Shown here piece after piece: positions 14,146-18,035 of a stretch of 64,000 bases of DNA. The stretch's first letter is position 1; each line of letters opens with the position of its first letter. The notes below the pieces were generated by a model, which was given only the letters and a program-made list of their open reading frames with translations, was not told the DNA's origin and did not search any database. The stretch covers positions 11,284,001 to 11,348,000 of the forward strand of contig CP075497.1 of assembly GCA_021613535.1 (NCBI GenBank), written 5' to 3'. Position numbers and translations under genes: made by a program. The stretch is from Adineta vaga (taxonomy: Eukaryota; Animalia; Rotifera).

Positions 14146-17100
14146 ATGCGACTCAAGACGAAAGCAGCCAAACGTCGTTCGATACCTTCAACATATCATG
14201 GTAAGTAAGTAAGATGAGCAAAAAATGTGTTAATCGACAGGAACAAATCTTGTTTGATAATAAATTAAGTACACATGTTGTTAATCCTCTCATTTACTGA
14301 AGATAGAAATCACGATTGACAAACATCAACATATCCTCCATTAACATGTGTGATACATTTTCATCTTTGAATTTCATTTTCCAAAAGTGTGAACGACATA
14401 CTCGCTTTTCGTTTCTTCTCTTCTTTTTTTTCAAGAATTATTCAAAACGTGTTACCGAATGCTTTTCTTCTTCATTTTTAAACTGACACATCAAACTTGA
14501 ATTTTAATGGAACCTTTATCTATTGAATAAACATAGCAACTTCATCAGTTCGTTTTTTCTTTATTCTCATACGCTCGAAACAAAAGATGAAATTGTCTCG
14601 AACATAAAACAATATATTTTGTTGGAGGGTAATATGAGTCTTTTGTCAGTCGTTTTATCTCATATACATACTTCACTCAACAGAGCCTATTATCTGTCCG
14701 TGATGATGATAGTTATGATTGAGAAGAAAAAAAATGGACAAATATTGACCTGTGTAGGTGTGTATACTTAAAAAAAAAATTCGAGATGTGCGCACATCGA
14801 AAACTTATCTCTTTTCTTTTTTCTTTACTACATATAAATATATAAATATATATATATATATGTCTGAATATTATCTTCATCCTGCGTATGTTGATTCAGT
14901 TGAGGATTACACACGATCATAAAAAAAGAGAACCCGAGAGAAAGCAGTGTCATATTTACGATATCTATCTATATTTCGACCTCTTCTGAATGAGGTGACA
15001 AGCTCTCAGCATGGATAATCATCGTCTGGAATGAGAGTAGAGAAATGAGACATGATGCCCTGTAGCGATGTCCAATTCTTTTGATTGAGAGAATAAGAGT
15101 CAGAAACGAAACAAAAACAGCAGCAGAAGCAATGCATCCGTTCGGGTGGAATCATCGTGAGAAAAGAACGAACGAACGAACGAACGAATGAAATATGTTG
15201 GCATCTCTCTTTCTTTCTTTTCTCCTTTATACAGGTGAGAGCGAAAGAGAGAGAGAGGGAGAGAAAGCAAATCATAGAAAAGATAAAAATTCATTCGATG
15301 ACAATCTCATGTCATTCACCATCTATCATTTGAATAAGAAAAACGACAGTAAGTTAGTGATTTTCATTTTTGACAGACAATCTTCATCTTTTCCTCAATA
15401 AGATGCACATTTTTGTAGGTAGCAGCCGGGGCACCAAATGTCTGAGACACTCGGTCGGCTCATTATCATTCATATTTTTTCTTGTTGTTAAAAAACGATC
15501 GAGAGATTTTTATTTGATTTCTTTGAATCATAGGTGGACGTATCACTAAAGTGCTCATTGATGGATAATGAGTTCATTTTATCGATGTGTGAAATTTGAT
15601 TTGTATTTTTTCATTTTTAGAATCCTCAAGTGAACGAATGATTATGAAATGTACAAATGTTATTCAACAAGACGATCAAGAATCTGATGACGATAATCAA
15701 GACAGTAAGAAGAAAATCGTTGCTTTTTTTATTATTAAAACACGTGTTTGAACATCGATATGTATTTATTTTAGCGAATGAAATCATGCTAAAGAATGAA
15801 CAAAATGATCATCAACATAGGTAAAATAAACAAAATCATCTTCGCCTTCGGATAGAAATTGTTTTTTTCTCTTCTTAATTAGTGAAATATATTGAATAAG
15901 TAGATAAAAACGAATAGAGAGTGTGATGTTTTAATATACTGAAAAGGCAACTAAAAAGAGAGAGAGAGAGAGAGAACAGAGAGGACTCGAGAAACAAGTG
16001 TGCGTCTTTTTCTTTCACGAGCGATTCATATTTAATCAGTCAAACTTTAATTTTGTGAATGTATGTCGTTCGACAACTTCCGAGCCGAGTAAACAATGGA
16101 GAAAAAAAACTGAGAATGTTTGAATTACATCTGTGTCTTTTTTAGAATGTATGACCGTCCTGACATGATTATCAATGGTACAAACTCAACTAATACTTCG
16201 AATTCAAGTGAAGCAAGTGAATGTGAAAATCGTCTCTATTCATGTCATGATTGTGGAAAAAGTTTCCAAACATCATCTGGTTTAAAACAACATAGAAATA
16301 TTCATTCAAGTGTTAAGCCATGGAAATGTGAAGTAAGAAAATTTGATTTCTTTGAAATTTTTTTAAAAAGAAATTTTCTTCGAACTATTTAGTTCTGTAC
16401 AAAATCTTATACACAATTTTCCAATTTATGCCGTCATAAACGTTCACATGCCAACGCTCGAACACAAATTGAATGTAAAGATTGTGGTCAATCATTTCAA
16501 AGTCATGTTGCATTGAATAAACATCGGTAATTTAGCAACAAAAGAAAAAAAAACTGATTAAGATAAAATTTCTCTTGTTATTGTTCTTGTAGAAGTTCAT
16601 GTAAAGAACGGCATATTTCATCAACAATGGTTCCACCTAATTTAGTTGCACTACTTCCATTTATTGATGCTTCATCGTTATTAAATCGAACAAAAAAAGT
16701 TGAAATATCAGTATCACCTAATGAACCAATTGATTTAACAAAATCATACAAACGTTCTAGACAATCATCGGACGATCAACCAATTGATTACTCGATCATA
16801 CATAAAAGAAATGATTTCAATTCTCAACATATTTCACATGTATTTGGTAATGAAAAACAAGAGAAAAAGTTTAAAAAAGAAGAAGATCAATATTATGAAC
16901 AACAAATCAATGGTGAAGATGATGATGACGAAGAAGAAGAAGAAGATGATGAAGATGAAGATGACGAACATTTAATATCAATGGGAAATAAAAAACTAAA
17001 AGAATTTGATGATCATAGACCATTGACACCAATTTCATCGTCATCAAGTCCTCAAACGATTTCATCGTTGGAAAAAAAAGCCTTTTTATCAACCAATGAT

Positions 17101-18035
17101 TCAACTCTTATTCGAAGCAAAGATCGATATTCTTGTACTTATTGTGCCAAAACATTTCCACGTAGTGCCAATCTTACACGACATCTTCGAACTCATACAG
17201 ATAAGTATTCTAATTACCCGCACTCTTAACAGATTCTTTTTGATTGGAAGAGAAACATTCTATCAATAAGGAAAACTTCTCTCATTGAGATTAGTGAATG
17301 ATACTTAGATTTCATTATGTTTAACATTTGCATGAATGAGTTGTCACAGTTCATTCAAGAAGATGATAGTTTTAAGAGCTAATTATATTGAAATATTCAT
17401 TTCAATGAGATGAAGTGTTCAATAACACCAGCTGATATCGAGAGAATTGTGTCAAATCAGTATGAGATGAATGATCATTTCGTTGCTTCATCATTTCTGA
17501 CAGATGTTCTCAGACTAATCAATAGAAAAATTCTAATCTTTGTTTTTGTTTTTGTTTCTTTTTACGAGAACAACCGTATGTATGCAAATTTTGCAATCGA
17601 AGTTTTTCAATTTCATCCAATTTACAACGACATATACGAAATATTCATAAACGTGAACGACCATTTCGTTGTACACATTGTGATAAATGTTTTGGTCAAC
17701 AAACAAATCTCGATCGACATATGAAAAAGCATTTATCTCAATCATCACCATCTTCATCTTTATTAACACAATATGAACGAAATGCAACAAGTTCATCATC
17801 ACAAATTCCATACCTTTCATCCATATCATTGGCATCATTTCATCCAAATGCCAATGAAAATTTACCACAAAATTCTACTGATGACGAAGATACAAGTGGA
17901 TTATCTGAAGACGATGAAGAAGATGAAGATATTGATGTTGAAGAAGAAGATGAGGAGGATTTAGAAACCAATTCTTTATCAATTGACGGTACGGATGAAA
18001 TAGGCCAACAACAAGCGACATCATCTTCAACATAA
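14146..18035 (+). CDS. MECOM/EVI1-PRDM16/hamlet/EGL-43 family zinc-finger transcription factor (3+3 fingers; no PR domain seen)
   Basis: Exons 14146-14200, 15621-15704, 15775-15820, 16146-16332, 16393-16526, 16593-17200 and 17566-18035 are phase-compatible. Family-diagnostic fingers: [70 protein letters not shown]. CtBP-type motifs PIDLT and PIDYS; acidic tail. The N-terminus [11 protein letters not shown] resembles MRSKGRARKL. Confidence 0.92.

Follow-up and report, generated by a model that had tools for sequence, protein, structure and literature searches.

The window, that is, the whole stretch of 64,000 nucleotides of the Adineta vaga genome that was analysed (G000:C6:11284001-11348000; the genome has 100.8 Mb in six contigs and about 30% GC), contains a zinc finger gene of the EVI1/MECOM type. 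The gene model, which was derived from RNA contigs, consists of seven exons with a probable start at about 14146-14200, which resembles the basic N-terminus of PRDM3/16. Exons were searched one by one, and the joined coding sequence was translated to check the frames. Pfam detects C2H2 fingers in four exons: the N-terminal cluster is formed by exons 16146-16332 and 16393-16526, and the last exon matches zf-C2H2 twice as well as zf-H2C2_2. The C-terminal block of three C2H2 fingers is nearly identical to that of animal homologues named EVI1 or MECOM by their sources, and the CtBP-type motif PIDLT together with DQPIDYS, at about 16690-16790, is nearly invariant across 45 relatives. This C-terminal block, the N-terminal fingers, the acidic tail and PIDLT are common to the rotifer gene and MECOM/EVI1, PRDM16, Drosophila hamlet and C. 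elegans egl-43. Two differences are seen in the comparison with the MECOM/EVI1 family. The RNA-supported exons of the rotifer gene contain no PR/SET domain, which is also missing from the short isoform of EVI1, and the rotifer gene has fewer N-terminal fingers than vertebrate EVI1, which has seven.

The last intron of this EVI1/MECOM/hamlet-like gene begins with AT and ends with AC. It splits, in phase 1, the Gly codon of HTGEQPY, the linker between zinc fingers of the eighth and ninth type. The features of the region are as follows (a slash within a sequence marks an exon-intron border).

16525/16592 (cut +1): GT..AG joint upstream of exon 6, taken from assembled RNA contigs
16593..17200, plus strand: exon 6, based on the ORF, RNA contigs X10 and X12 (on 16592-17200), a zf-C2H2 match and an alignment of 45 sequences; it encodes the CtBP-like PIDLT, DQPIDYS, an acidic stretch and the first C-terminal zinc finger, and its G at 17200 is base 1 of the Gly codon
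17198..17208, plus strand: 5' splice site CAG/ATAAGTAT, based on the sequence and the genome's U1 genes
17201..17565, plus strand: AT-AC intron, 365 nt, phase 1, based on the sequence, DNA and RNA contigs and relatives
17227..17229, plus strand: TAA that is in frame upon retention (ORF 16627-17229), with a predicted product that lacks the final two fingers along with the acidic tail
17264..17517, plus strand: part of the intron under low-depth RNA contigs (X10 record 11, X12 record 17)
17531..17537, plus strand: branch-point-type box TTCTAAT; 17536 is the likely branch A, at a distance of 30 nt from the 3' end
17538..17563, plus strand: polypyrimidine tract of 26 nt; pyrimidines make up 86% of the bases between the branch A and the 3' end
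17564..17565, plus strand: 3' terminal AC, unchanged in DNA contigs; YAC/GAGAAC in all 15 distinct rotifer-type introns
17567..17568, plus strand: AG inside the Gly-Glu codons, three bases past the AC; the unused, Gly-deleting AT-AG alternative
17566..18035, plus strand: last exon, with the remainder of the Gly codon, EQPY, two zinc fingers, a Ser-rich stretch, the acidic tail and the stop at 18033-18035

Exon 6 ends in ...CATACAG at 17200, the intron opens with ATAAGTATTC at 17201, and the next exon starts with GAGAACAACCG at 17566; at greater length the text is ...CGAACTCATACAG (17200) / ATAAGTATTC ... ATTCTAATC TTTGTTTTTGTTTTTGTTTCTTTTT AC (17565) / GAGAACAACCGTAT. Reading the upstream ORF (16627-17229) past the end of the exon adds DKYSNYPHS before the stop at 17227-17229, and the downstream frame, open from 17568, continues through the Ser-rich stretch and the acidic tail to its own stop. 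The sequence T-G(G/GA)-E-Q-P-Y is restored by the 17200/17566 joint only, and therefore sequence and frame together require this joint; the predicted spliced text is ACAG/GAGAACAA or a synonymous variant of it. There is no GT-AG alternative in frame, the nearest GT (17205-6) and AG (17567-8) being out of frame, and the choice of AT-AG (17200/17569) would lose the Gly of HTGEQPY. The first-pass annotation of this DNA had claimed an intron of 365 nt with AT-AC ends, needed by the HTGEQPY linker and with no in-frame GT-AG substitute, whose retention would lead to the stop at 17227-17229 and deprive the protein of its last two fingers as well as its acidic tail. All of this is borne out: the length by positions 17201-17565, the linker and the missing substitute by the frame check, the truncation by ORF 16627-17229, and the terminal bases by the sequence, the DNA contigs and the relatives described below.

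Support from sequencing was taken from assembled contigs, namely those of DNA runs X7 and X1 from two studies and the RNA-like runs X10 and X12 from two further studies. The label of the latter is 'RNA?'; they were taken as RNA because they carry GT-AG joints. The DNA contigs of X7 (16975-17666), which span both ends of the intron, and of X1 (17225-17666), which reach only the AC end, agree with the window at every terminal dinucleotide within their range. The contigs of X10 and X12 (720 and 721 nt) lie on 16592-17200 and then on 17568-17666, skipping the intron and keeping the frame. Exactly two record letters (X10 record 10, X12 record 16) separate the 17200 piece from the 17568 piece, so that three RNA letters stand between 17200 and 17569, a length that fits the AT-AC joint and shows that the AG at 17567-8 is not the acceptor. 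A spliced transcript joining 17200 to 17566 had been called for as a check, and it is found in part: the skipped intron, the preserved frame and the length agree, but 17200/17566 is missing from the list of detected joints and the two joint letters evidently differ from the GA of the window, which is present at that spot in every rotifer relative. The RNA haplotype carries other SNPs against the window (16644, 16700, 17139 and 17178), and a synonymous strain SNP in the Gly codon is probably the explanation of the differing letters. According to the RNA contigs and joints, the five other introns of the gene are all GT-AG; their donors are weaker and their pyrimidine tracts shorter.

Metagenomes of moss, peat and sludge supplied the nearest relatives of this gene. 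When the exon was used in a word search, more than 50 rotifer-type ORFs came back in which translation continues past the exon into the intron; transcripts or proteins of the same species were not among the returns from the protein collection, from which records of the window's own genome or of a very close one may be missing. The codon following RTHT is GAT (Asp) in 54 of 55 read-through ORFs, which means that the intron starts with AT, and those readings that extend into the following exon show ...TAC GAG AAC AAC.... Twenty-seven rotifer-type loci were fetched as DNA and, with the window and the second gene copy of this genome added, gave 14 distinct introns; a further locus, L093, provides the 15th. 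All of the 14 are AT...AC, and with L093 included 15 of 15 end in AC and 14 of 15 begin with AT; the 13 that lie beyond the window and the other copy are from metagenomic relatives. Conservation of such odd ends in 15 distinct rotifer-type introns excludes chance. Twelve of the 15 (bdelloid-type, 57-872 nt) share CAG/ATAAGTAT, TTCTAAT, the pyrimidine tract and YAC/GAGAACA. Within these 12, ATAAGTAT is invariant, TTCTAAT always lies 20-33 nt from the 3' end despite the wide range of lengths, and the pyrimidine content after it is 81-97%. Nested or recursive GT-AG splicing was also considered and is ruled out, since in some relatives the intron, with identical ends, measures no more than 55-57 nt.

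The other gene copy (L086, G000:C3:5655731-5659285, minus strand) has an exon at G000:C3:5657231-5657785 with 54% protein identity. Its intron is likewise AT-AC and agrees with that of the window in the codon, the phase, ATAAGTAT, TTCTAAT, the pyrimidine tract, a YAC end (CAC) and the flanking coding sequence, but is 97 nt long instead of 365 nt. The protein tree supports the clade of the second copy (95/99), and the position of a divergent group, L025-L031, and the root are without support. In this divergent Adineta-type copy the intron is 55-57 nt long and reads ATATGTTG...TCTAC, with an ATATGT donor and a CTAC end. The group was at one point regarded as a non-bdelloid rotifer, which would have made the intron older than Bdelloidea. 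Both ideas were dropped, because the adjoining gene for the short coiled-coil protein SCOC (L029:4627-4929, minus strand) is 98% identical to that of Adineta ricciae and places L025-L031 within the bdelloids, in Adineta. The proposal to look for the same intron in relatives is thus answered by its AT-AC form in the bdelloid relatives, and since both copies and many bdelloid lineages keep this form, the AT-AC state is older than the divergence of the two copies within bdelloids. The intron of L093 (L093:540-615, from a metagenome) reads CATACAG/AGAAGT...TTCTAC/GAGAAC, that is AG...AC, without TTCTAAT; the contig is 811 nt long and of low quality with poly-G junk at its end, and AG...AC may be an error.

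The exon bases next to the intron also show a bias. Of 14 distinct rotifer sequences, 13 have ACA as the Thr codon on the 5' side, and GA follows every rotifer intron whose 3' end was read, giving the Gly codon GGA, whereas the same two codons vary freely in other animals. This fits a constraint on exon bases beside splice sites, although part of the bias could stem from the AT-rich composition. The Gly itself is invariant in HTGEQPY of every homologue read. Outside the rotifers, one GC-rich animal (L052:612-882) has an intron of 267 nt in the same phase-1 position; it splits the same Gly codon, but its ends are canonical GT-AG and it has no pyrimidine tract. No intron is present at this position in most other animal contigs, in a barnacle or in a fly. 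The human MECOM intron that is misused in SF3B1-mutant leukaemia was considered as a counterpart and rejected, as it is located at the end of the second finger domain and not in this linker (PMC9412007). A paralogous zinc finger gene of the same genome (L087, G000:C6:10137756-10140854, minus strand), which encodes the same protein text, carries a GT intron that lies 8 nt further downstream, following GEQ and in phase 0; loci of the L053-L072 type resemble it, with a canonical GT intron 8 nt further downstream.

Introns with AT-AC ends are removed by either of two spliceosomes. U2-type ('type II') AT-AC introns have been known since 1997 from SCN4A/SCN5A and TAF2, according to the account that Sheth et al. 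2006 (PMC1557818) give of Wu & Krainer 1997 and Dietrich et al. 1997. They are rare: a survey of five species counted 24 among about 610,000 introns (human 15, mouse 6, fly 3, worm 0, Arabidopsis 0), and those of SCN4A/5A and TAF2 are conserved (PMC1557818). The class is characterized by a donor that follows the major consensus at all positions but +1 (PMC1557818), and by a YNYURAY branch site followed by a pyrimidine tract. The 5' end of the genome's own U1 is ATACTTACCTG, and the donor CAG/ATAAGTAT pairs with it at 10 of 11 bases, leaving only +1 (A for G) unpaired; agreement with the major consensus was judged by this pairing rather than by the published PWM score. The TTCTAAT box and the pyrimidine-rich sequence after it correspond to the second property. 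The first-pass annotation had accordingly been right in assigning the ATAAGT donor to the major type and in pointing out a CTAAT box at 17533 with a long T-rich tract.

Could the intron instead be a degenerate AT-AC minor intron removed by the U11/U12 spliceosome? AT-AC ends are typical of minor introns, and bdelloids, which have lost nearly all of their minor introns, retain a few (PMC10639083). The suggested search for U11 and U12 genes was positive, and all four minor snRNAs exceed the Rfam cut-offs (U12 78 bits, U6atac 83, U11 81.7, U4atac 92.8). Hence, the terminal dinucleotides and the required snRNAs in the genome are what the rotifer intron has in common with the U12-type class. The signals of the intron point in the other direction. 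The U12-type donor ATATCCTT or ATATCC is absent; the intron reads ATAAGTATT, as do its relatives, and has only ATA and the two final T's in common with ATATCCTTT. The U12-type branch box TCCTTAAC does not occur 10-26 nt from the 3' end, the sole CTTAAC being 24 nt from the 5' end, and in its place there is the 26-nt pyrimidine tract, with the candidate branch box 20-33 nt upstream of the 3' end in relatives. The recognition sequences of the minor snRNAs are standard (U11 AAAAAGGGC; U12 ..GTAAGGAAAAT.., also ..GAGTAAGGAAAAT..; U6atac ..AAGGAGAGA..), so that a true minor intron in this genome should look canonical, and these canonical U11, U12 and U6atac sequences could not pair with the intron. 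Removal by the minor spliceosome is therefore improbable.

Two further explanations concern the ends themselves. The mature mRNA might use another joint, either AT-AG at 17569 with loss of the Gly or canonical ends present only in the expressed strain or allele. An AG does lie at 17567-8, and both the deviating joint letters and the SNPs of the RNA haplotype could be read in this way, but the three RNA letters preserve the frame and one codon, the Gly is invariant, and AT and AC are kept in the DNA contigs of two studies and in the relatives other than L093, which leaves this explanation with very little probability. The least probable explanation takes the intron for an ordinary GT-AG one whose ends were misassembled or wrongly sequenced: it has the general rarity of AT-AC in its favour and nothing else, and it is refuted by the recurrence of the same bases in independent DNA runs of two studies, in this gene's second copy and in another 13 distinct relatives, whose assemblies are the work of other groups. 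Given the major-type donor, the absence of U12-type signals and the standard minor snRNAs, 17201-17565 is very probably a genuine AT-AC spliceosomal intron of the U2-type ('type II'), removed by the major, U1/U2-dependent spliceosome.

We infer the choice of spliceosome and the role of the terminal A and C from the anatomy of the signals and from the literature (PMC1557818). U1 would recognize the donor CAG/ATAAGTAT by near-perfect pairing, and U2 would take the conserved TTCTAAT box about 30 nt before the 3' end, with the long pyrimidine tract as an aid. During the second catalytic step, A1 of the intron may pair non-canonically with the terminal C, in place of the usual contact between two G's, and it is proposed that owing to this pairing the AC is used and not the AG three bases downstream. 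The strong auxiliary signals would thereby offset the weak terminal bases. Splicing may nevertheless be somewhat slow, leaving some unspliced RNA whose frame ends after the first C-terminal finger. In work cited in PMC1557818, a first-base change of G to A is rescued by a change of the last base from G to C, although less efficiently than GT-AG is spliced.

With the known type II introns of SCN4A/SCN5A and TAF2 the rotifer intron shares AT-AC ends, a donor that is of major type except at +1, a pyrimidine tract and conservation among orthologues. It differs from them in the gene and the phylum, in the unusually strict set of signals in bdelloids (ATAAGTAT, TTCTAAT) and in that the spliceosome is here judged from sequence. 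The literature searched contains no description of AT-AC introns in Adineta or of such introns in rotifers, and the rotifer EVI1 intron adds a new and well-supported member to a class that, although rare, had been described before. It offers a clean natural case of the major spliceosome tolerating an A...C terminal pair when the other signals are near-perfect, and one that has been kept in both bdelloid gene copies across many lineages. There is also a practical consequence. Gene predictors limited to GT-AG and GC-AG introns would truncate or misjoin this developmental regulator and its other copy in every bdelloid genome, with the loss of two DNA-binding fingers.

RNA contigs also fall inside the intron: X10 record 11 (17264-17512) has a depth of 4.85 and X12 record 17 (17353-17517) a depth of 7.3, against 29-47 for exon contigs. 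Intronic RNA thus amounts to approximately 14-25% of the exon word depth in two studies, contig depth being a poor measure of RNA level, and the depth is about 0 over the 1420-nt and 325-nt GT-AG introns of the same gene and over intergenic DNA. The low-depth intronic RNA hints at slower splicing, retention or a stable excised intron. As an addition to the U2-type reading, it is conceivable, if rather doubtful, that the weak terminal bases make the intron a regulated retention switch, in which the unspliced form yields a truncated protein with one finger or a degraded mRNA. On the one hand, intronic contigs occur in two studies at this intron and at neither of the two GT-AG introns just mentioned, the stop is located 27 nt into the intron, and according to PMC1557818 introns with A1 that are rescued by a terminal C splice less efficiently than those with GT-AG ends. 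On the other hand, the intronic contigs stop short of the exon borders and could represent the excised intron, contig depth says little about the amount of RNA, and the position of the stop is not conserved, the divergent Adineta-type copy having an in-frame intron of 57 nt without a stop.

A wider and equally tentative proposal is that bdelloids carry a whole set of major-type AT-AC introns, defined by CAG/ATAAGTAT, TTCTAAT, a long pyrimidine tract and YAC, some of which could be minor introns converted while the lineage was losing nearly all introns of that type, and that the EVI1 intron may be a slowly spliced member which tunes the amount of the full-length three-finger protein. This proposal is weakened by the pattern census of the genome, which shows no clear excess. 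The loose form of the census gave 34 matches against 77 in the reversed control, and the strict form gave 6 AT-AC, 2 AT-AG and 2 GT-AC matches against 4, 9 and 4, respectively, in the reversed controls; neither form is informative. The same proposal is supported by the fact that the other EVI1-like copy and an M1 aminopeptidase gene each have an AT-AC intron. Should bdelloids have further introns of this kind, these would provide useful material for studying the origin of the type II class, that is, conversion of minor introns as opposed to paired mutations in GT-AG introns. The M1 aminopeptidase intron (L094, G000:C6:7245037-7245097) is 61 nt long, carries the same set of signals, reads AAG/ATAAGTATTC..GTTCTAAT..TTTTCTAC/GT and splits the Gly codon of WLNEGFA.
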